The notes: generated by a model from the letters alone, not told the origin. Counted from the stretch's first letter, positions 702 to 15,815 are shown. The stretch is 64,000 nt of DNA from Klebsormidium nitens (GCA_000708835.1 DF237016.1:62001-126000); one strand, 5' to 3'. Made by a program: numbers and translations.

Positions 702-2011
702 GTTCGCTACGGATCATTCTAGAATACTCAACTCGACAACTCTTTGCTGTAGTGAGATGTGCAGCAAACCTCGGAGGTGGGCTTCTAACCGTCGATCAAT
801 TTTGCGTCTTTTGTCAGGATTCTTTGCTTCAGAAGTGGGGAAGTACGTGGTGGGGTGAATCCTTTGGACAAATAAACACCAAGGAGGAGACGCACCTTTG
901 AATCGAGCTAGGGCTTATAGATTGTGAGCCCGCATTAGGATTGCGAGTATGTCGATCGTACACAGCTCAATCATAAGGGGCAACCAAGACAACTTGTGGG
1001 AATTCATGCTAGCTATAGGAAATCGACGAGCATGACGCTCTTGTAAGGTCCATGGCATAGAGAGTAGCTAGGGTGTTAATGATATAGATTGTACAGCATG
1101 CTGATAACGAAGGCTATGTACATTGGGTTGGGTACGGTAACGCTGACGACACGGTGGTTTGCAGCCCATGGGCAGTCTGGCAGATTGGCAGACCTGCAGC
1201 GGTAAGGGAGATTGAAGTTGGGCCGTATGTGCCCGCCATAGAGACCGCGTTGACTTGCAGTAGATAATATATATTGGCTAGATTCCAAGAGCCTGGTACG
1301 TTAAAGCACGTCACTACTTTATAGGTGGAACTGAGGTTGTCAGGAAGGAGGTGTTCGGTCGCGATCTTCAATTTCAATTTTGATCTAGCTCGCGACTGCA
1401 GTGCATCTCAATCATCAGCGGAAGCTAGCCATGTAAAGCATCGCGATGACGTACCTAGCCTGAGATGGATCGACTAGCATGTACGAATATATCCGGCCGA
1501 TAGTCGGAAAGAAAGCGTGTATATATTATTCAGAACATGAACAACTCGAGAATGCATTGCAGCCGACTTTTTCCCGCCTATAGCTGTATGGTTTCAACCG
1601 ATCCAAGAAAGGACATTTAAGGAAGCCACGCGGATCAAAAAATGAGCTTGAGAGTCAACTGTTCACTGCCAACCCACCGGCGCATGGATGATCTCAAGTG
1701 ACTGGCCCGTGCCCCACCAGCTACTCCTACAAGCGAATCTGAGTATCTCTCTTCAAAATTGCAGTTTCTGTACAATCGCTGCGTCTACGAGGCCTTGTTC
1801 CGTCAAAAACCTCGTCTACAAGCGGCCATATGCACAGTAGTTTGACGCATAACAAGTAACAATCAGGGCAAAATCTCTCAAAAAAACGCCGTCTCAGGTT
1901 TTGATCTCTCAAGAAACGGCCGGAAGTTTTGTTGAACCCCTCGAACAATGCAACAAGCTGTAACCTAAGGAGCAATGTTTTATGGAAACTCTAATACGTC
2001 AATATGGAGGG

Positions 2012-5000
2012 TCACTGGACATTGGCAGCCTGTTCTTTGATCTGCTCCGAGACGCCCCGCATTTGCATTGCAATTTGTGTCAATGGGACGTCGTTGCTCT
2101 GCAAAGAAGACCAGGAGAAGGTCTTAGCTCGTCGGGCTTCCGATTACGATCTCCACAACAAAGTACAGCGTACCGCAACTATGTACTCGAGGATTCAGAT
2201 TAATCAACAAACAACATTGTTTGCTTGTCGATGATATCTTCGGCATCATTTAAAAAAGGGAACGTGTCCGCATCACCACAGAAGCGTAAATACCCGTTGC
2301 TTCTGACAGACGTCCAAATTCAAAACGGTGAAGGTCACCGACATAACCAGCCAGAAGCAAACCTGCCACGTCACAGCCACGCGGAGGCCTTTACAGCAGC
2401 AGGGCGCAAAGATCTGGAGGAGGCAGGGGTGCATTTTTATTGCTTACCTTGGAGCATATTGTGGCGCACTCTCGGGTGAACTCTTGACACAGAAAGTCCA
2501 GCTGCCGGCCGATGCTGAGGGGACGGTCGGAGCCTTCCTCGTCTTTGCCTTTCTTCGGAGATGTCGCTTGCCTAGTACGAAAGGGAGGATAACTTAAGGA
2601 GAGATACACAGCTGACGCCGAAAAGTGGCCAATCACATGCCTTCCGCTGGACCTAAGGGCAGCCCCGTTAGACCATCTCTGGCGGTTAAACGCCATTGCT
2701 CTTCAAACGTTTGGTAGCTACCAAGTGATTTCCTTAAACAAACGCTTTCAGGTTGACTGAAGGCTCTAAAGAAACATCGAGGGTCAAACAGAGGCCCCCA
2801 CTCAAACACCTGATTGAAACACGTCCGTCTCAAACGTTTGAAATACATTCAGGCGGGAATGGACCCTGTCAAGCATACTCAGCACTCAAAGAGAGTAAGG
2901 CTCTGAACACCTCCACTAACATCCGGACCGAGGGGGGGCCACCCGCTGCGCTCGACAGCGGTAAGCCAAGTGAAATGGGTCCACGGGACCGGTCAGAATT
3001 TGTTATCAAAGTCGTTCCTTGAAGCAGATGGCTAAGAAAAGTCACTGCATCTGACTACCAATTAATGACTGACAATGGGAGGCCTTAGCTGAGCAACGTC
3101 CTCGAACAGCGAATAACCAAGTCGCGGAGAAAGGGCAGCCCGGCTTACTTGTGGTGTCCGCTCAAGAGCTCCTTGGCAGCCACGATGTGCGATCGCAACC
3201 GGTCAACCTGCGAAGGGGACAAATCCGCTCGATCATCATTGTGCTATGTTCGACAGCAGCCACATGTTAGATAGCAGGTCATCGGAATTCACGTACCGCT
3301 CCATTCGTACACAATTCAGCAAAGGGACCAAGTTCCTGTATCTGCTAGAAGGGACGGGGTCCCTTAGACCTTGACGACTGACGGCAGGCAAAACCAGGTG
3401 CGATGTCGGCGACCGACCAAACTGGTGTCTGCCACGTTGATAGGACGAAGGGCGAGAGGCTTGCATGAGGCAAGCAGGCAACCGCTGAGCTGAGACAGAC
3501 AAAGGCGCGCCGACCCACGAAGAATCGATGACCGCGTTAGAGACTGTGGGCAGAAATGACGGAGGGAAGCACACTGGTCAACAGATGCAAATACGTCCGA
3601 AACAACAAGGCGCGGCTCACTTCTTCCCGGACGTCCAGCCTGGTGGTGAGCAGGGCCACCTCCTGCTCCAGCCGTCCGGGGTCCAGCGCGCGGAACGTCT
3701 CCAGGAGCTCGCCCACCTGAAGCAGGCTCAATTTGTGAGCCCTTCTTTTACCGATTGAAAAAGAACATTTACTTGAGGACTCAACAAAGGAAACTCACCA
3801 CAACCTTTAGAATCAAAGTATCTCGTTGGTCTATTGACAGGCCTCCTTGAAGAGAGCACACAGCATTTGGTTTGTCTGAACTTGAAAGGTCGCGTTCCTT
3901 GCAGCTGGCTTCGCGCAGACTAAGCGAGGCTGAAAATGGCAAACAGAGGGCGGTACAAGCACGGCACGTCGACATCCACGTACGGCTCGTTAAGTGCTCC
4001 CTTTGCGAAGAACTTTGTTTTAGCCATCGATTTAATGCAAGGTTGTCCCGACCGCCGTGACAGTACAAAGTCCTCTTCTCTGGATACCCGGACACTTCAA
4101 TGAACGGGCATGCATGGCCCTTTCAACTCCCAACCGGCAACCGGCTGTATCTTTCGAGACGAACACTACCTGCGAAGCTGCACGCTTTCTCGCCAAATGA
4201 GCGACAGATAGGAGCAAAGTGACAGCGTCTTGCTGAACTGCGCACCTGTTTCTGCATCCGATCTTTGAGGTGGGGCAGCCGTTCTTGCGCCGTCACGGCG
4301 GCTTGCTCCACTAGGGCCTCCAGCTCGGCGACCTGGCCGCTGAGAACCGCCCGCAGCCGGTCGCCCTCCGCGGCCCGGCTGTCCAGCAACTGGTCCAGGG
4401 CGTCGTGAAGACTGCAGAAAGGTCGTTCCCCACAAGAAGGCCGGTGAGCCGAGCGAGAGAGTTGCAAGACGTCAGCGGACGGAAAACGGACACGTCATGG
4501 AAGAAAGAGCGCCGGAATAACGTGATTTAAATACCACGTGCTATGAAAGGCTGCCGCACAAGGGCACACAGCCCCACCCGCATTTTGGCCGTGCTTCAAA
4601 GCCCACCTTTCCGTCAGCTTCTGCACGAAGTCTTCTTTCTCCTCCTCGCTCTCCTCAGGCTCTTCCCATCGCACGACGCCCTGTGCGCAGTTGTGAGAAT
4701 AAGGATACATGAGGCGCTTCAAAGCTGCAAATCATTTCGAGAAAACGCCAGAAGATATGATGTTCGCCGGTCAACATAGAGGCAGCGCGTCTAGGGGGGC
4801 CGTCTTTCCTCCACTTTGGACAATCCGATCATCTCAATTTTGCATAATCATCAGAGCAGGGCAGATTCCTGCGTTGTTCTGGCGCGCTGCATACAGGCGT
4901 TCAAGGTTTTATACCGTCTGAAGACTCACCGGAATTTGGAGAAGGTGCCCATAGTTGAACCCCCCCGGTAATTGGCGTGCTTCGCGTTGGAAAAGTCGGT

Positions 5001-8000
5001 TCATCGCCTCAAGTGCCTGCACGTGCGGTGCATTTCTTGCAATTTGCTTCGCATTCCTTGGAGTTTTCGAAGTGCGTAGGGGACGATTACGCAAGACGCA
5101 TATAAAAAATCTCTGCTCCTGCGGACTTCTGACGATCCTGGTTCAACAAATCCTCGATGCTCTTTCTCCGGGTAGTGTGTTTATGACACTAGCGGCTTCT
5201 TCTGTCCATTGGCACTCATATAAAATAAGGATCAAAACACAGTGGGACGTTATCCTCGTTGGATTTCAAGACAAGAAACCTTATCATAACGTGCGTGCTT
5301 GCGACAAAGGACCGACGCCAGTCCTCCACAATGCTGGAAGGGAGCCGCTCACAGGACAAAGGATAATATGATATGCAATTACTCACTTGTAGCATGGCGT
5401 CCTCGTCTATGACCAGCCGCCGGTCTTGCTGCTCCTTGTCCATCTGCAAGCGCGGCGCAATGTTAGCACGCACAGATAGAGCATCAGCCCACAGTTTTGA
5501 ATTGCGGCCAATCCCTCCGACGAATTGCCGCCAACGCATAGAAAGTCCAGATATCAGAAAAGACGGCGGGCTCAGTTCAGCCGGACTTCAAAACGCTCAA
5601 GCTGACGTGTTTGCTTACTGAAGGGCTGCTTACGTGGCGACCTGGGCCATTTGGTAGACCCTTCGAAACAAGTTTTGATCGATCGGAAGCACGATCAACG
5701 AAGATGGTGCAAATTAATCTTTGCAGCACAAGGACTGTTTGTCAAACGGACAAGTAAATCTGAGAAGCGCAAGCGCTGCTATCCCCACCTTGATGTCGAG
5801 AAAGCAAGAAACGGAACCGCGCGCGAATCTTTCGGCGGCAGCGGCGAGGGCGGCTTGTTCCAAGGAAGAGTAGCCACTGGGCACGCGAGCGCGCACGTCC
5901 AAGCTGCGCCCATTCACGCTCTTCACCTGACAAACGGGTGGACGTTCATGCAGAATCTCAAAGGTTTTGCTTCGTCCCTTCAACGCGCGACTTTGGTAGT
6001 CTCTAGAAGCCTTCCGCCCCTTCTGCTTCGCAAAATGCAGCATCTTCAGGACATCACTCCAACCGCCAGCTGACGTGCTCATGCAATAAGCCCGACGTAG
6101 GGGGCGACATAAGCTTAGTGAATCAAAATAGTCTCCTTGCATTCTATGCGCCTAAGAACGCTCAGCCAAATCAAACGCGACGGACTCTCCTCCCTTCACG
6201 GTGCGGCCTTTGCCGACTAGCCCACAAGCTTCGGTTTTCAAGAGGTGCAGTTAGCAGCAACTAATCCATCGACGCACCAAAGTACCTTTTGGTGGAAATC
6301 GAATTCAATCCTAACGCCTCAAGAAGCCAGCACAACCAGAGTACGAAAAATATTCATACAAGATAATGGAAAACGGTACATCGGTCCTGGTCCTTGCACA
6401 GGACGTACCTCCCAACTCCAGCACCTTTGCTTGTGCTTCCCGTCCACTTTTGAGAATCCCGACATGCTCGAGATGCGCGAGCGTACTTCTATAAGGTCGA
6501 CTTCCGTCGACTGCTCCTGTGTGATGGTTTTTGCAAACAATTTTTTGAAGTAATCCAGATTGCAGCAGTCGATCTGCCAGGGCCGGATCCTGTGCGAGGT
6601 AACTAAACCGCCCGCAACATATGGGTCTTGTGAAACAAAGTCCTCCACAACTGCGAGCAAAACGAAAGCGGTGGTAAGCATACTGAGTCTGCATCGGATC
6701 TACAGGGGAGAACAAATTTCCCCGGGTGACAGTTAGGGCCCCTCACTTTTTGAACAAAAATCGAACAAGACGGAACTAGAATGCTCCCATTAACGCGCCA
6801 ACATCGAGTTGATTGTGAATCTATATCCGTCGATCAATCACCGAGCCAGGGAAAGCTTCGAGCCCTGGAAAGAGCGTCCCTGCATCTTAGCAATAATTCT
6901 GAGTGAGTACGCCAATCCGAATGTAGCAACATGCCTGCAAAACGATAAAGAGGTCGCGTTACCCTCCTGGGGCTAGCAGAGTCATGACAGTCAACGGCGC
7001 ATTCTTACCGGACTTGTCGTTCGTCCCAAAGAGGAGAAGTGCGCCGTCGATGGGGTCCCCTTTTGGCCCTCCGATGATGCACCGTTCTGCCGCCAGTTTC
7101 AGGTGCGCCTCTCTATATGGGCCCCTCTTTTCCAGAACGTCACTGACGTATGCTGCAACCAGATAAGTGGGTTCTCTTTTGCAATACCTAAACGAAACTA
7201 CAAGCCCAAAGATTGAAACGTTAAACAGCGTATCAGGACCAAAAATACTCTCACTAATATTCCTAATGATCTTACTCACATGTTGATCTCCAGCAGCAAA
7301 TTCTTATCATGAAACGACTGCGTCTAGACAAGGAAACCCGAGATCGACAGCTCCTTTTCCAGAGGGCAACTAACATTTGAAGCTGTTGCAGGCCTCTCTA
7401 ATTACAAGCTCACGAGTTGGATACGATCTTTGAGAGTGACGGTAACAATGCAGGCACTCACTGTATTCGAGCAGATGAAGTACCGGCAAGTCATGACCGG
7501 TGACTGGATCTTCCGCAAAAGCTGCCTCTGGGAAATTGCTCAGAGATTTGACAACAGCGGTCCACGGGGTCAGAGAGACTCTTCCCACCCACTCTGGTTC
7601 TCCTAATTCGATATACAAAAAATCTGCGTCGTGGTGCAGAATGTTGATGTGAGAAGAAAAAGGAGCGAAGATAAAGGAAGGCAAGGAGTAGGACAGCCAA
7701 CACTAAGTTTGAGGCAGTTGGTACTAGCAAGGCAAATTACAGAGGAAATTCTCAATCATCTAGACATGCTGCTCCAATGAAACAAATGAATGTTCAGTCT
7801 TTCCAAACATGCATGTCGGAACCTCACCTTCTAAATCTTCCGTCATGTGGAGTTCGCAAATCCTCAAAGGAACTTCGGGGCCAATGCTTCCCTCTATCAT
7901 GGATTGTTGAAGCATGGCAACATTTTGGTTGTCCAAAGGGAAACCAACTCCAGCATCTTCAGCAGGGTAAGAGTGGGTTTCAATTTGTGGAATGTCCCTG

Positions 8001-8751
8001 ATGAGTAGGCACATCAAACTTGATCACAGCAGAACAAGTGAGAAGCCCAAGCGAGCATGCTGGGAGCAGACATCCTCCTCATGATCATAGGAAAGGAAAT
8101 GAGAAACACATCCCAAAGAGGCTGGCAAGTTTGCCAGCACGGCAAGCAAAGTTTTTGAACAGCAGATATGACAAGGCGCCTGAAAAGATTCTCAGCACGA
8201 GCGGCAGACTGATGTGCAGCTCCTGAGTTCTACTTGCACCACCTGCCCATCAAGTGACCATATGCAACCAATGAAAAGCTTTCAAAGCTCAGACTGCCGT
8301 AAAGCTGTAACTCCAGATGAGTGGACCCAGGGTCTGGTGCCTCACCATACTCAAGCATCGTCAACTCAGCACTGCTTTGCATTGAGCTTGCTTTCGTCGT
8401 ACAAACCCTGGCTGCATTGCACCATGGAGCCCATCTCCAGCCTCGCTTCACTGCAATGTAATCGGGGAATGCTTTCTGATGCCAAGTTGGATTGCTTAAA
8501 TGGACAAGTTCACCCGTTGATTGCTTCCATTCTGATAGACCCCTGCCCAGCAGCCCCCTATAGGGAGCCAAGTGCTGCCTGCCTTCTCCATTTCGTTGCA
8601 ATGCACTTGGAACATGGAATGATCTGGTCTGCAATGCAGTGCAGCTTGTCATGGTGAATCTTTCCAGCTCCAGCTTTGAGGCTGGACGAACACAGTTGCA
8701 AAACGTCAAGCGCTTCTTGAGAGGTCTCGTCAAACCACGCAGCTTTAGCAT
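2012..8751 (-). CDS. yicC: Fusion protein of about 704 aa: transit peptide + unknown domain + YCII domain + YicC/YloC-family endoribonuclease (14 exons)
   Basis: Phase-consistent GT-AG exons: 8751-8243, 7997-7828, 7623-7462, 7152-7009, 6650-6409, 5926-5789, 5443-5387, 5016-4930, 4680-4607, 4411-4246, 3716-3621, 3207-3149, 2571-2448, 2098-2012 (2115 nt). YCII motifs: YTYVSDVLEKRGPYREAHL, IIGGPKGDPIDGALLLF, VEDFVSQDPYVAGGLVT..IRPW. YicC motifs: SSMSGFSK..WSWEVKSVNGRSLDVR, RAAEGDRL, RLEQEVALL..DVREEVDRLRSH, GRQLDFLCQEFTRECATICSK, EQIKEQAANVQ*. Confidence 0.9.
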
Positions 8752-9710: not shown

Positions 9711-9931
9711 TGATAGTTTTGCGCCAGTGGCAGCAGAGTCTGATCAACCGGACCCTTTCCGGCCAAACAGCCGTCCGAACCTGTCGATGGACGGAAATGT
9801 TTGCGATCATGTGTGATCGCTGTATGAGGCTGAGCTGGACGAATTGTGCTAGCGCCGGCGGCGGCCTTCAGTTTTGGCGAGGGAGCACTTCCAAGCAGAA
9901 GCCTGAGCTACAGCCTGAACGGTACAGCACG

Positions 9932-12900
9932 ATGAAGGTTCATCAAGGAACGTCCGTCTTGTGCACTGGGGCAGGTTCTGGCATTGGTCGAGAGACGGTG
10001 CTGGCGCTTGCAAAGCTAGGTGCAGATGTCACAGTGGTGGATCTTTCAGAGGAGGGCGGCAGAGAGACTGTCCGTCTAATTGAGGAGGCAAGGCAAACAC
10101 TTTCTGGCAGACAAAGTGGCGGGCCTCCGGCGGCCATTTTTGTCAAGTGCGACGTCACCAAACCAGGTAAGTATGCTTAGCTGTGACTGCAGACTCTGCG
10201 CTTCTTAGGAGCTGGATTGGCTTCCTAGCTTGCTTTGGGCCTATCCTCTATGAAAGGAAAGTGAGCTCACGCAATATGTCATTGAAACTCCTTCAATTCT
10301 TGTTTACTTCTTATGCCCTTTGATCAATGCTAAAAACTGAAGCCATCATGCACGTACAATAAGATTATACCACCCCATGTTTAGCTTCACCGATCTAAAA
10401 GGACTTGTGTCAAACATCTTTTGCAACTTCAGACCGCTCAGTGCGCCTGTCCAGTGGTGGCGTCCTTGATTTCTGCTTGCAAACAATTGAGAGACAGCGG
10501 ATTGCAGTTGTAGAGACACTCTGCGTTGTAACATGCATGATCAATAACTTCTGTCGTCATATTTGCAGAACAATTGGTGGCTGCGTTCAAGGCTCATCTC
10601 AGCACTTACGGCAAGCTAGACATATGCATCAACAATGCTGGGATAATGGAGAACACGCGCTTTTTGGATGATGCCTCAGAAAATGGGGCAGGGGCCTGGC
10701 GAAAAGTCGTGGACATCAATCTGACGGCCACCATCGATGGAACGCGGCTAGCCGTAAGTGCTCTCATAGGTCCAGGAGACTGTCTGCTTGATGTGTTTAG
10801 GCATTTGATGAATCCATCATCAGAGGACCGTCACAGGACAACAATCTTGTACAGCCCTTAAACGAGACTCGTTGACTCCGTTAAGAACGCTTTGGAACAG
10901 GACTTGTTGGCGCAGGCAAGTTGCTTGGACCAGAACTAAAGCCTGGATTGTTGTCAGGACTACATGACATTGAAAGAGCTGACGCCGTAAAGACCGAACT
11001 ATTTGAATGGTCTGGTGCCAGGTAGAGCTTCAGGGTGACGGCAACTGCAGGATGTCAGCTTGATTGCTGCTTGCATGTGAATCTTTCTGCCGACGAAACC
11101 GGAAACAAATTGGAAAGTCGCATCTGTTTGCCGTCAAGCTTTTCCAGCTTTTCACTATTCCGTTTTTGTTTTGACTCTTCTGCCTGAGCCTGCTTGTTTG
11201 CTTCCAATCATCCAATGTCCTTCTTTTCTCGCTCTCGCAGCTGCGGGCCATGCTGGAGCGCAAGACGCCCGGCGCCATCGTCAACATTGCCTCAGCCGCC
11301 GGCCTCTACCCCACCCCCTTTGGGCCCATCTATGCTGCTTCCAAAGGTAAGCTCATCTGCCATTATGTGTCATAGTTCACTCCTGTTGTGTGTGTACTTG
11401 ACTAGTTTCTCTGTAGATCAGGGTGAATTTCTGAAATCTTTAGTGACCTTCAGCAAGACAAAAAATGGGCATGTATTGCCAGTCACTCAGAAGTAGCTCT
11501 TAATAACTGCTTCGTCCAAAATCCAAAGTGTTCCCCAATCTTGCGTGTCTGGCCTAGTCTCTGTCGCCCCTACGGAAGATTCTGAGATCAAAACCGCTGA
11601 ATGACACTGCAATGAAATCCATGAGGTTGCCCCTGCCTGTCGGTGCAGGCGGTGTCGTCCAGTTCACCCGCTCGCTGGCCCACTTCTCTAAGAAAGGCAT
11701 GCGAGTCAATGCCCTCTGTCCCCTCTACATCCAGACCCCCATGTCATCTCCCGGCGTTGGATTGATCAAGTCCTACTTGGACGAAGCTGGGGGGTACATC
11801 CCCATGCAAACTGTCATAGATGGTGAGAACGCTTTAAAACCTTATCCCCCCTCTCTTCTTTTCCCAATTTCAGGGGGGGTGGTCCAGCTGACGAGATCAT
11901 TGGGTCACTTCAAGAGAAAGGGAGTCCGAGTGAACGCTCTGTGCCCCGAGTTCATTGACACGGCCTTGGGGAAAATGGCCGAGGAACACATCGGAGCGCA
12001 TCTCAAGTCGGTGGGGGGCTTTATTCCCATGTCGGTCGTAGTAGAAGGTACGGCCGGGTCTTTCCGGTTGTGCTTCACCAAAGGATTTCAAGTAGGAAGC
12101 TGTACAGGCGAGGAAGTCAACATTCCCGTTCAACATTCCAACACGATTGTCAGGAAGAGTAGACACGTGCCAAATGCTCGAGTGTTCCGGGTTTTGTTGC
12201 CGACTTTGTCAAGCCAGACAAGGCGTTTTTTTGTTGCACCATCAGTATCTGATGCTTATATTTCGTATGGTTTCCTGCTGACCTGCCCGGTTTTATCATC
12301 CCAAGTCAGCCGGTTCAGCTTGCTGAATCTGTGCGCTAATCTCCTCTGCTAACCCGGCGCGAGTATCGTCATTCCACAGGCATCCTGGAGCTCATTGATG
12401 ACGACAGCAAGGCGGGGGAATGCATGCGCATCACGAATCGGACGGGGCGAGACTACTGGCGGCCGAAAAACGTGGGGCCGCCAGCGAGGGGGCAAGGGAA
12501 ACCTGTGGCTGCAAACCTTCCAGCGGAAACCCGGAAGATGTGAGTGAAATTTGACTTGCTGGGGGGAGAACAGGAGGAACGCAGATTTTCGTTCTCCCTT
12601 TCGTGACCCAATTGTGATAGCCTTAGGCCTTTGTTGCGAGCCACGGCAAATGCGTGAAGTGCTCACAGACTCCCTGCTTTTTAATCTCGTGAGATTGTCG
12701 TGATCGAGGCGATGGTAAAATGGACTTTCGCAGTGTAGCAGAGAAGCTCTGCGCACGGGCGGCAACGAAACCTCTTTTGAGAGCGTTTCGTCACGATCTC
12801 GTTGAAAATAGACAATGTCCCCAAAGTACTACGTGACTCTTCAAACAAGCAGCATATTCGACTTTCATCTTTGTGCCGAACCTGGACGAGCGGACGTTGT

Positions 12901-15815
12901 TTCCACGTTGTATCTCATCCTTCTTCACCCTGCAGTGTCGTCCACACTCTGAGCACGGACTTCCGCTCCGCCACGCGGCTAGTGTCAGAACCCATGCCGC
13001 GTCCTGCCAAGGGGACCATCCTGATGCGACACGTCTACGCCGGCATCAACGCAAGCGACGTAAGGGCTGGAAACATTTCTTGCTCCCGTTCGCTCCGAGT
13101 AGCCGGTCACGGAATCTGTTGATAATCCGATAAATCTGTGCTTAAAAGCTCAGTCCTCGTTGATACTTTCTTAGGAGTTGTACTTGGGCATGTCCCATAA
13201 TCGTGCTTGGTCTCTCAAGCTCTCAGCTGGCACTCCCTTTCATCCCAAGTTCATTCGCACTGCGTCTCCACTTAATATTTCCTACAGGTTCGGCCCAGCC
13301 CTGTGACTGCAACATGTGCTCAGACTGTGTTTCCGCACCTCCTCACCTAAGCTAATCCACCATACTTCAACTTTCTTTCTGACCACTTCACGAAGTATTG
13401 TTAGTGAGCATTAACCTACCCATGTTTAGCGCTTTCATTTCCGCTCTACTGCAGATCAACATGAGCGCCGGGCGTTACTTTGGCAGCCACGAGAACGCGC
13501 TCAAGATGCTGCCGTTCGCTGCCGGTTTCGAAGCCGTTGGAGAAGTCGTCGCGGTCGGGGAAGGCGTCAAGGACTTCGCCGTGGGCGCGCCGGTGGCCAC
13601 GCTCTCGTACGGCGGCTTCGCAGAGTACTCACAGGTGAGGCTTTCTTCCTCGAACGATTCATACGAGTAGCCGTGGCTTCTGTTCTTGTGTCTCTCGCGA
13701 AAACGGAGGTCAAGCGGCGGCTCTGCCGTTTCAGATGCTGGCTGACACTTGAAGCAGCTCACTAGTTGCGGTCGTTGACAGCGACAAATTTTTCGCAACA
13801 AGCGTCGGAATCTGCAATACATGCTCTGTGCAGTTTAGCACCGCTGTCTCTTTCAGTTCCCGCGGGAAGGTCGAGGGTGAACAAACCTGCAAAGTGTGCC
13901 TTCCTCAGTTTCATGGAAGCATGCTTGGGTTGCCAGTCCCTGGGTTTGCCATTCGACGAGCTTCTGTAGATGAAGTCAATGATGAACGAAGGCGGTGCAA
14001 TTGAAACGAACGTGGATGATCCTGCGCAGGTGGATGCAAAGGTAGCCATCGCCGTGCCGGAGATCTCTCCAGAGTTGGTTGCCATGCTGACGTCAGGTCT
14101 GACGGCTTCCCTTGGACTCGAACAGGTGGGCCTTTCGTTCGAACTCTCGGGTATTCCGGATTTAGGTCCTTCCGAACAACAAGGAGCGCCTCAGCGGTGT
14201 AATTGTGATGCAACCGTCACTGTTTGCGATTTCTCGAATGGCTGCCTTGCCGGCAAAGGATCACAGGCTTCCACTTACCGCGCACACGTCACTGAAGATT
14301 CCATAAGCAACCATACGCTGGCCTGCTTTCTTTGCCTCGTTCTGCGTCAAGTCTTACCGTTCTTCGTCAGGGCAAAATGGGCACCGGCGAGACGGTTCTG
14401 GTCACGGCGGCTGCGGGCGGCACCGGCCAGTTTGCGGTCCAGCTGGCGAAGCTGGCGGGGAACACCGTGGTCGCGACGTGCGGGGGCGCGGAGAAAGCGG
14501 CCCTCTTGCGGAGCCTGGGGGTGGACCGCGTGATCGACTACCGGACAGAGGACGTCGGACAGGTGCGGAAGTTTTGGATAAGAACGCTTTGGACGGCCAT
14601 AAAGTCGTTGCATTGCCGTGGAGGGACGCAAGGTTTATGGAGGTTAGGAGTTGGTGCTAGCGGTCTCGGGCTCTGCAATGGTTCGAAACGACGTTCGGGA
14701 CAATCCGCTAACGCATCTGCGCTCAACATTTGAGCTTCCAATTTTCTACTAGCATCCTCTGGCGAGCACGCTTGCGCGAACGCGCGAAAAAAATTCATGC
14801 CATCAGCCTCGGCAAACATTGACTCAAGTAACCCCCGTCGTAATCCGTGCCCGCTTTCAGCTCATACAAACCCCTTTCAGGGACTCCAGATTTTTTCCTA
14901 CTCATTGAATTCTTTGACCCGCACCGCAGGTGCTCAAGACGGAGTTCCAACAAGGTATGGACGTCATCTACGAGTCGGTGGGCGGCAAGATGTTCTCCAC
15001 GTGCGTCAACGCGCTTGCGCGCGGCGGCCGCCTCGTCGTCATCGGGATGATGTCACAGTACACGGCTGACGCCAGCAAGGGCTGGGCGCCCTCGCAGCAG
15101 ACGGGCCTCCCGGAGAAGCTGCTGTGGAAGTCGCAGCAGCTCATCGGCTTCTTCTTGGTGCACCACACGCGGGACTACCGCAAGCACCTCGCCAAGCTGA
15201 GCAACCTGCACCGAAGCGGGCACCTCAAGGTGGGCGGAGTTTGCGAATGTCAGGGTTTTGGCGCTTTCCGGGTGCTGGGAGTTTTGCAGACAGCTCGAAC
15301 ATTTGGGAATTGAACCGTGCTATGAATGTTTGCTTAACTTGAATAGGCGAGGCGGTTCTTGGTGCTGCTCAGCGCTCCGCCTTTTCTTCCTAGGAGGCCT
15401 CTTTCTTAGCAGTACAGAGGACCCTCGCGATGCAAGAGCGGATGTCCTGGGTTATTTGAGCTGAGGAGGAAAGGCCTGCTCAAACCGAAATTGTGTTGTC
15501 TGTTTGGATTTTGATTCTATACATGAGGAACCATGGATTCCAGCGGGTCTGTTTGAGAGTTCGTCAAGACTGCTTTCCTTTCAACAACTGTCATCCGCTT
15601 GAACCGCTCTGTGATTCGCGGTCTGTTGCTTTAAAGAGTCTAGCGTTCGCCTCATTGTGACACGTGTCCCGTCTATGCAGGTGGCGATCGACCCCGTGCA
15701 GTTCCGGGGCCTCGAGTCCGTGCCGGATGCAGTGGATCACCTACAAGCGGGGAAGAGCTTGGGCAAGGTCGTTGTCACGATTGCGAAGAATGCGCAGCGG
15801 AGTTCAAAGCTGTAA
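9932..15815 (+). CDS. Bi-domain oxidoreductase: N-terminal short-chain dehydrogenase (HPGD-like) + C-terminal MDR/ZADH2(PTGR3)-like quinone oxidoreductase, with a PTS1 signal (plant NQR/ARP-type)
   Basis: SDR motifs TGAGSGIGR, INNAG and YAASK. MDR motifs YAGINASD, AGFEAVGEV, LTSGLTA, VTAAAGGTGQFAVQLA and YESVGG. The C-terminus is ...SSKL* (TAA at 15813-15815). Exons are canonical GT-AG. Confidence 0.92.
11649..11822 (+). other. Duplicated exon A (174 nt, phase 1-1) of the SDR domain; putative mutually exclusive exon
   Basis: cag|GC...G|gtgag boundaries; encodes GVVQFTRSLAHFSKKGMRVNALCPLYIQTPM...GGYIPMQTVID. Confidence 0.8.
11874..12047 (+). other. Duplicated exon B (174 nt, phase 1-1) of the SDR domain; putative mutually exclusive exon
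   Basis: cag|GG...G|gtacgg boundaries; encodes GVVQLTRSLGHFKRKGVRVNALCPEFIDTAL...GGFIPMSVVVE. Same length and phase as exon A, with 51 nt between them. Confidence 0.8.

Follow-up and report, generated by a model that had tools for sequence, protein, structure and literature searches.

Background

Proteins of the YicC/YloC family were recognized as ribonucleases (RNases) only in 2021-2024, and in the papers examined the family is regarded as exclusively bacterial. The enzymes form a hexameric clamshell that encloses RNA and cleave it with divalent metal (PMC11417398, PMC8906540, PMC12255296). Alanine mutations of M5, N28, R30, E216, E217, F244, R251, E252, R280, and E281 in Escherichia coli YicC abolished the activity (PMC10793500). 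In the present study, we analyzed a 64,000-nucleotide stretch of DNA from the streptophyte alga Klebsormidium nitens (GCA_000708835.1 DF237016.1:62001-126000; hereafter, the window). The gene KFL_000670100, annotated as encoding a hypothetical protein on the minus strand, carries a YCII domain and a complete YicC in one polypeptide. An initial annotation of the window, made from the DNA sequence alone, had proposed an intron-containing eukaryotic YicC fused in frame to YCII; this proposal is borne out, as the gene is expressed and the RNA joints, the Pfam matches of YicC, the homologues, and the predicted fold all agree with it.

In the literature on YicC/YloC (DUF1732, TIGR00255), we found only bacterial work and no paper on a eukaryotic YicC. 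The YicC/YloC family papers examined mention no eukaryote, and in the plant papers matched to YicC and chloroplast, the word YicC is absent from the main text. The K. nitens gene is the first described eukaryotic, intronized, and YCII-fused member of a family previously described from bacteria alone.

Results

Fusion of YCII and YicC within one exon

The product consists, in order, of an N-terminal region of about 90 amino acids (aa), one YCII domain with a His/Asp pair, a linker of variable length, and a complete YicC/YloC-type endoribonuclease. The two domains meet in the exon at 6650-6409 (coding exon 5), which reads VVEDFVSQDPYVAGGLVTSHRIRPW...ISSMSGFSKVDGKHKQRCWSWE (VVEDFVSQDPYVAGGLVTSHRIRPWQIDCCNLDYFKKLFAKTITQEQSTEVDLIEVRSRISSMSGFSKVDGKHKQRCWSWE) in one uninterrupted frame. 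This exon alone holds the C-terminus of YCII (to about 6571, with Asp158 in QDPYV), the linker (6570-6478), and the start of YicC (from 6477, ISSMSGFSK...WSWE), and the run from one domain into the other is independent of splicing, as was initially pointed out. Furthermore, the whole of the fusion exon was found within RNA contigs in which it is spliced to exons on both sides; therefore, one mature RNA carries both YCII and YicC. These contigs contradict the possibility, raised at the outset, that transcripts are split between the two parts.

KFL_000670100 has 14 exons and 13 introns, every intron being GT..AG, and its annotated product (P0001) is 525 aa in length. The three minus-strand frames were read, and short open segments bounded by GT..AG were chained into exons; the sequence of P0001 was exactly rebuilt from 14 exons (8358-8346, 7956-7828, and then twelve from 7623-7462 to 2098-2012). 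A search of sequencing runs found parts of the stretch in 20 runs from 7 studies. Contigs from four runs, each of a different study and with an RNA status guessed from the record of the run, were placed on positions 1901-7900 of the window (6,000 letters). Twelve joints, identical in all four runs, were obtained: 2098/2448, 2570/3148, 3205/3619, 3713/4243, 4411/4607, and 4679/4929 in the 3' part of the gene, and 5015/5386, 5443/5789, 5924/6407, 6650/7009, 7152/7462, and 7623/7828 in the 5' part. All are bordered by CT..AC on the plus strand, which corresponds to GT..AG on the minus strand. As the contigs are without the twelve genomic introns, only spliced RNA can be their source. The ten downstream junctions agree among the RNA contigs, the initial annotation, and the model that we first assembled, so that the splicing proposed there for the YicC part is confirmed in four studies.

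In three of the runs, low-depth contigs (depth 3-30, compared with 110-180 for the spliced ones) pass unspliced through several introns, at 2135-2461, 2587-3090, 3199-3592, 5899-6436, 6622-7038, and 7123-7491. These look like pre-mRNA or intron retention.

The YicC part

A complete YicC had been predicted over the last 10 exons, and all joints of these exons, from 6650-6409 to 2098-2012, are present in the RNA contigs. After the start in the fusion exon, coding exon 6 (5926-5789) encodes the N-terminal sheet of YicC (VKSVNGRSLDVR..., with N235 and R237). Coding exons 7-10 (5443-5387, 5016-4930, 4680-4607, and 4411-4246) encode the cap, the hinge, and the start of the helical stalk, and coding exons 11-14 (3716-3621, 3207-3149, 2571-2448, and 2098-2012) encode the C-terminal domain (DUF1732) with R430, E435, E436, F482, R489, E490, K518, and E519, followed by the stop codon TGA at 2014-2012. 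In P0001, Pfam detected YicC-like_N at residues 209-369 (E value 1.6e-33, 116.7 bits against a cut-off of 25) and YicC-like_C at residues 390-524 (7.4e-29, 100.8 bits against a cut-off of 27), in the usual domain order. Even among single exons, YicC-like_N was matched by exon 6 alone (8.5e-11), and YicC-like_C was partially matched by the C-terminal exons. In BLASTP, residues 224-540 of the spliced model aligned with residues 2-287 of E. coli YicC (29% identity, E value 6e-33), and exons 7-10 align with residues 70-200 of the latter.

The AlphaFold model has a predicted local distance difference test score (pLDDT) of 86.8 over residues 205-525. It shows a predicted hook-shaped fold composed of an N-terminal sheet, a long helical stalk, and a C-terminal helical domain. 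In Foldseek, this model matched 8VER, 8VES, and 8HVJ (E values from 5e-20 to 4e-11, template modelling (TM) score by target 0.64-0.79, 296-319 columns), and all other matches had E values above 0.01. Nine of the ten residues essential in E. coli are identical here (M212, N235, R237, E435, E436, F482, R489, E490, and E519), and E. coli R211 is retained as R430. Modelling was poor only for a charged insertion of about 20 aa (HHKQATSPKKGKDEEGSDRPLS; residues 453-475 of P0001) at the boundary of exons 12 and 13 (3149-3207 and 2448-2571), which has low pLDDT and no counterpart in bacterial YicC; an insertion of different sequence is found in the orthologue L003 described below. Judged by homology and predicted fold, this part amounts to a complete endoribonuclease of the YicC/YloC family, and its sequence is of the alphaproteobacterial type.

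The YCII part and the N-terminal region

The YCII domain begins in coding exon 3 (7623-7462), which encodes the remainder of the N-terminal region (TPWTAVVKSL...) and the first YCII strand (LPVLHLLEY). This exon is bounded by joints 7828/7623 and 7462/7152 in all four runs and has orthologous exons in the contigs L002, L003, and L004. The core of YCII (YVSDVLEKRGPYREAHLKLAAE...LLLFGTNDKS, with His118) is encoded by coding exon 4 (7152-7009), bounded by joints 7462/7152 and 7009/6650. This exon is 72-81% identical in L002-L004 and 46-47% identical to P0126 and P0127, two small proteins containing PF03795. The PF03795 profile, spanning positions 3-95 of its 95, scored 20.3 bits with the whole protein and 21.7 bits with residues 1-200, where the cut-off is 24; the Pfam check thus placed both YicC domains above their cut-offs but PF03795 below. 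In single exons, neither Pfam nor a sequence search of the PDB gave a YCII match, the whole domain being needed.

The region matched the PF03795 proteins P0126 (E value 1.3e-17, 49% identity) and P0127 (3.4e-13, 48% identity), both with a long N-terminal leader. The AlphaFold model of residues 92-176 has pLDDT of 72-95, and its four best PDB matches are YciI HI0828 (E value 1.8e-6, TM score 0.70 by target) and TftG. A search of the ESM Atlas with the AlphaFold model also found YCII clusters over residues 82-185. His118 (REAHL) and Asp158 (QDPYV) align with the His/Asp pair of HI0828, and neither residue varies among P0126, P0127, and the orthologues. Taken together, the homologues, the predicted fold, and the His/Asp pair confirm the YCII assignment.

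The residues before YCII are conserved among the orthologues, and the AlphaFold model is unreliable for residues 1-71; its ESM Atlas matches are confined to residues 82-185. BLASTP and hhalign comparisons of this region with YCII were negative for a duplicated YCII domain. The own model of the ESM Atlas and its language-model features for the region are ferredoxin- or YCII-like (TM score 0.5-0.69, scores of about 0.8), which hints at a second, degenerate ferredoxin-like or YCII-like domain.

A side observation concerns the final 45 bases of the intron that precedes exon 4 (7153-7197, minus strand). Its in-frame reading, ...KREPTYLVAA continued by YVSDVLEKR, mimics the first YCII strand. At this place L002 reads LAAAYV, and low-depth unspliced contigs cover 7123-7491. 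This intron tail may be left over from an earlier exon boundary, or it may serve as an alternative acceptor.

Distribution of the fusion

A phmmer search of 1.84 billion representative proteins with the fusion exon gave six matches, the best being P0001. Besides P0001, only three fragments (P0002, P0003, and P0004) span the YCII end, the linker, and the YicC start, and they contain the fusion exon as well. The other two, P0005 and P0006, in which the linker was matched ten times each, are translated tandem-repeat DNA (...YLKSLYTKTVTVQQSEH...) and were discarded as chance matches. The contigs that bear the three fragments (L002, L003, and L004) carry the same multi-exon fusion gene. Over 10 kb, L002 and the window are collinear, their introns being about 69% identical, and L002 is therefore from a congener. 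L003, a Joint Genome Institute (JGI) metagenome contig, contains the whole gene down to ...REQAANVQ, and L004 contains its 5' half. At the DNA level, L003 and L004 resemble the window in the exons only, a pattern indicative of purifying selection. The same architecture is kept in all four loci. In alignments A2 and A3, MAFFT misplaced exon fragments and short YCII proteins, and those rows were excluded.

The linker (compared at L003 6612-6995, window 6409-6650, and L004 2735-3019) varies in length, from about 20 residues in L004 and 31 in K. nitens to about 75 in L003, while both flanks are nearly invariant, as would suit a flexible tether.

Other searches found no further fusion. The N-terminal 225 residues, compared with proteins of 289-919 aa among 5.8 billion sequences, matched P0001 alone. 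PF03795 occurred in none of the 120 best YicC matches, and none of the nearest ESM Atlas clusters combines YCII with YicC. When JGI metagenome contigs were scanned for the fusion exon, none of the 72 pattern matches was confirmed. Furthermore, a YCII open reading frame (ORF) lies within 1.5 kb of yicC in none of 80 alphaproteobacterial loci, and thus the fusion is no copy of a bacterial operon. The fusion is real, undescribed, and confined to a few close relatives; that it is already widespread or characterized in eukaryotes is contradicted by these searches, which found it in only three further contigs, all of related algae, and by the literature cited above.

Origin of the YicC part

The 120 best matches of the YicC part are 283-327 aa in length, and every named one is alphaproteobacterial (Rhodovibrionaceae, Kiloniellaceae, Pelagibius, and Roseibium). 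No other eukaryotic protein was seen among these 120, which were drawn from nr, UniRef, and EukProt. The best 80 of 582 matches in GTDB species are likewise almost all from Alphaproteobacteria. Identity in alignment A1 is 38-44%, compared with 29% to E. coli, and the nearest relatives (40-44% identity) are all alphaproteobacterial. The alphaproteobacterial look that had been ascribed to the W.WE motif was well judged, as the alphaproteobacterial consensus WTWEVKSVNGRSLDVR...DFLCQEF agrees with the algal sequence. The three algal sequences group together, with 100% support in the Shimodaira-Hasegawa-like approximate likelihood ratio test (SH-aLRT), in a maximum-likelihood tree of 98 rows. Their clade is placed within a polytomy of non-Hyphomicrobiales Alphaproteobacteria, and E. 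coli is the only outgroup of the tree. The sampling of this tree is biased, since the search patterns were alphaproteobacterial. The tree indicates an alphaproteobacterial type of sequence and does not separate a late horizontal transfer from mitochondrial descent.

The 5' end and a possible import signal

The initial annotation had placed the gene at 2012-7623. Its 3' end is correct, with TGA at 2014-2012, and its 5' end is not: an internal exon begins at position 7623, two further coding exons (7956-7828 and 8358-8346) lie upstream of it, and therefore the N-terminus proposed there is not that of the protein. The R/K/S/T-rich composition reported for it is also withdrawn. The correct frame of 7623-7462 is acidic (DFLYIELGEPEW...), and R/K/S/T-rich peptides are read only in a wrong frame or in the intron segment 7376-7280. 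A model starting at ATG 7376 (exons 7376-7280 and 7197-7009, 12 exons in total) is ruled out by the RNA joints 7462/7152 and 7828/7623, its basic peptide from 7376-7280 being intron sequence. Another, starting at ATG 8014, was replaced by the annotated acceptor 7956, which yields P0001 exactly. Coding exon 2 (7956-7828; residues 5-47 of P0001) encodes the first part of the conserved N-terminal region. Its acceptor is taken from the exact match to P0001, its donor joint 7828/7623 is present in the RNA contigs, and it is conserved in L002 and L003.

Coding exon 1 ends at the donor 8346. The annotated start is ATG 8358 (MLEY), and no stop codon interrupts the frame between 8760 and the donor, a span of 135 codons. 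At the protein level, this open frame is conserved in L002 (68% identity, E value 1.5e-56, with one in-frame indel of 2 codons) and in L004 (32% identity, 7e-11), and in these comparisons it always terminates as M[LV]EY at the exon 1 donor. All four loci have the Met of MTSCTAL or MISCTAF (ATG 8652), and in L002 and L004 no in-frame Met precedes it. The in-frame ATG 8751 is not conserved, as L002 has Lys there. On the basis of the open frame and this conservation, we propose a protein start at 8652, with coding exon 1 at 8652-8346 and a product of 623 residues. The added 98 residues contain 12 K+R, 5 D+E, and 18 S+T, and the first 40 of them contain 5 K+R, 1 D+E, and 7 S+T. This basic and Ser/Thr-rich extension is a possible candidate transit peptide. 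The odds are about even that translation starts at ATG 8652 and that the extra residues would serve as an organelle import signal, which would make the protein an organellar RNase. The N-terminus from which an organellar RNase was initially suggested has been lost, and the idea survives only through the extension from ATG 8652.

A short-chain dehydrogenase (SDR; adh_short) gene lies at about 9900-14600 on the plus strand, divergent from the YicC gene and collinear in L002 (600-5100). The two genes have a common upstream region of about 1.2 kb. As the SDR gene starts at about 9900 and is collinear in L002, no further 5' exons of the YicC gene are expected.

Discussion

The account that we favor, with a probability of about 0.7 as a whole, is that KFL_000670100 is an expressed nuclear gene for a YCII-YicC fusion that would act as a hexameric RNase, that its YicC part was probably acquired from Alphaproteobacteria, and that its product has even odds of being imported into an organelle. 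By analogy with the bacterial enzymes, the C-terminal 318 residues would assemble as a hexamer (a dimer of trimers), close around RNA, and cut it with divalent metal. Catalysis would be carried out by a Glu cluster (E435, E436, E490, and E519), and the RNA would be held by the basic residues R237, R430, R489, and K518. Six YCII modules would then lie outside the barrel, hung from the N-termini by flexible linkers. Active YicC in published assays carried an N-terminal SUMO tag (PMC11417398), so a sizeable extension at the N-terminus need not impair activity. The YCII modules would most likely be a regulatory, ligand-binding, or substrate-selecting appendage, and the two domains probably contribute to one process. 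After the transfer, the gene would have gained introns and been joined to a YCII gene of the small, presequence-bearing type. To our knowledge, the sole characterized YCII member is a dehydrochlorinase. In Alphaproteobacteria, yciI stands in a conserved operon with tsaD (tRNA modification) and a gene for the EVE modified-base reader (PMC7641849), which fits a link of YCII to RNA metabolism. A more specific idea, that YCII would be a ligand- or modified-nucleotide-sensing gate on the hexameric YicC, making it an organellar RNA-decay enzyme and the first YicC-type RNase acting in a eukaryote, is speculative, and we think it quite unlikely in this full form.

Several observations weigh against the favored account. 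The YCII score is under the Pfam gathering cut-off (20-22 against 24 bits), a detection threshold rather than a family trait, and the role given to YCII in the fusion is a guess. E. coli R280, which is needed for RNA binding, is K518 in K. nitens, and this substitution, together with the roughly 20 aa inserted in the C-terminal domain in this lineage, might indicate that the nuclease activity was lost and that the protein only binds RNA or serves as an adaptor scaffold. The same was originally suggested for E. coli YicC, which RefSeq still labels an RNase adaptor. However, K. nitens and L003 both retain the four catalytic glutamates along with the remaining essential residues, L003 has R at the position of R280, and the fold is predicted with high confidence, so that loss of activity seems improbable. 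Nor is the origin free of difficulty: E. coli is the only outgroup of the tree, the algal stem is long (1.22), and there is no specific bacterial sister, the best bacterial matches being only 40-44% identical. With the alphaproteobacterial affinity, these features would also suit a mitochondrial heirloom, that is, an endosymbiotic gene transfer followed by loss in nearly all other eukaryotes. That scenario would require massive parallel loss, since no other annotated eukaryotic protein occurs among the 120 best YicC matches and, outside K. nitens, the fusion turned up in just three contigs of related algae; we consider it rather unlikely. A horizontal transfer from an alphaproteobacterium into an ancestor of the Klebsormidium lineage, inferred from sequence comparison, is likelier than a mitochondrial relic, because the distribution is very narrow and transfer is the simpler reading. 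The bacterial best matches of the YicC part could further be taken as a sign of an artefact, either contamination by a bacterial contig or a wrong joining of neighboring genes. This reading is already refuted by the thirteen spliceosomal introns, the spliced contigs from four independent studies, the junction inside a single exon, the exon structure repeated in L003 and L004, and the gene order, including the neighboring SDR gene, conserved in a related species.

The N-terminus is where the favored account meets its strongest competitor. Exons 1-2 and the start codon rest on annotation and conservation, as the RNA coverage ends at 7900, and the N-terminus read from the annotated start at 8358 is acidic and without a presequence. 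The upstream ORF has a GC content at third codon positions (GC3) of 0.51, compared with 0.69 in the confirmed exons, and substitutions by codon position in it (24/19/32) show only a mild third-position excess. These points speak for a rival reading in which translation begins at ATG 8358, the upstream frame is a 5' untranslated region or an upstream ORF, and an active protein works in the cytosol or nucleus. Against this, the 135-codon open frame runs precisely up to the donor, L002 and L004 keep its length, frame, and Met, the MTSCTAL Met is also present in L003, the only indel is in frame (2 codons), and the composition of the extension is typical of import signals. We regard a cytosolic or nuclear protein as a plausible alternative that falls a little short of even odds.

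An expressed, intron-bearing YicC copy in a streptophyte alga, with catalytic residues that appear conserved in sequence, extends the family to eukaryotes and adds a candidate to the enzymes of organellar RNA processing. The YCII fusion, conserved across four lineages, is among the few functional hints for the large orphan family YCII. The gene would also offer a clean and datable example of a bacterial gene that was intronized (13 introns) and fused after transfer, in a lineage close to the ancestors of land plants. Its wider importance is limited by the narrow distribution and by a function that is so far predicted from sequence and model.

Comparison with known systems

The YCII part has the ferredoxin-like fold and the His/Asp pair in common with HI0828 (1MWQ) and the dehydrochlorinase TftG (4LBH/4LBP), at about 25% identity. 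Unlike these, it is part of a larger protein, upstream of an RNase. Compared with P0126 and P0127, it has a 5-residue deletion after helix 1. An ESM Atlas cluster of 394 aa from Thermodesulfobacteriota joins YicC to a RemA-like domain; YicC therefore tolerates fusion to another small domain, although that fusion is bacterial and has another partner. We came across no discussion of this other natural YicC fusion.

The organellar RNases of plants, namely RNase E/G, RNase J, PNPase, and Mini-III, are bacterial-type, nuclear-encoded enzymes with N-terminal import signals; they are widespread across the green lineage and, for the most part, cyanobacterial in type. In contrast, the K. nitens gene is alphaproteobacterial in type and belongs to a narrow algal lineage, with an organelle location only as a candidate. 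Unlike YicC of E. coli, YloC of Bacillus subtilis, and CD25890 of Clostridioides difficile (8VER, 8VES, and 8HVJ), it is a nuclear gene with 13 introns, and its product has 200-300 extra N-terminal residues (a possible presequence, the N-terminal region, YCII, and the linker), about 20 aa inserted into the C-terminal domain, and K in place of the R280 of E. coli YicC. With these bacterial proteins, however, the K. nitens protein has in common both Pfam domains, colinearity over the full length, the predicted fold, the catalytic Glu cluster, and the RNA-binding Arg residues.

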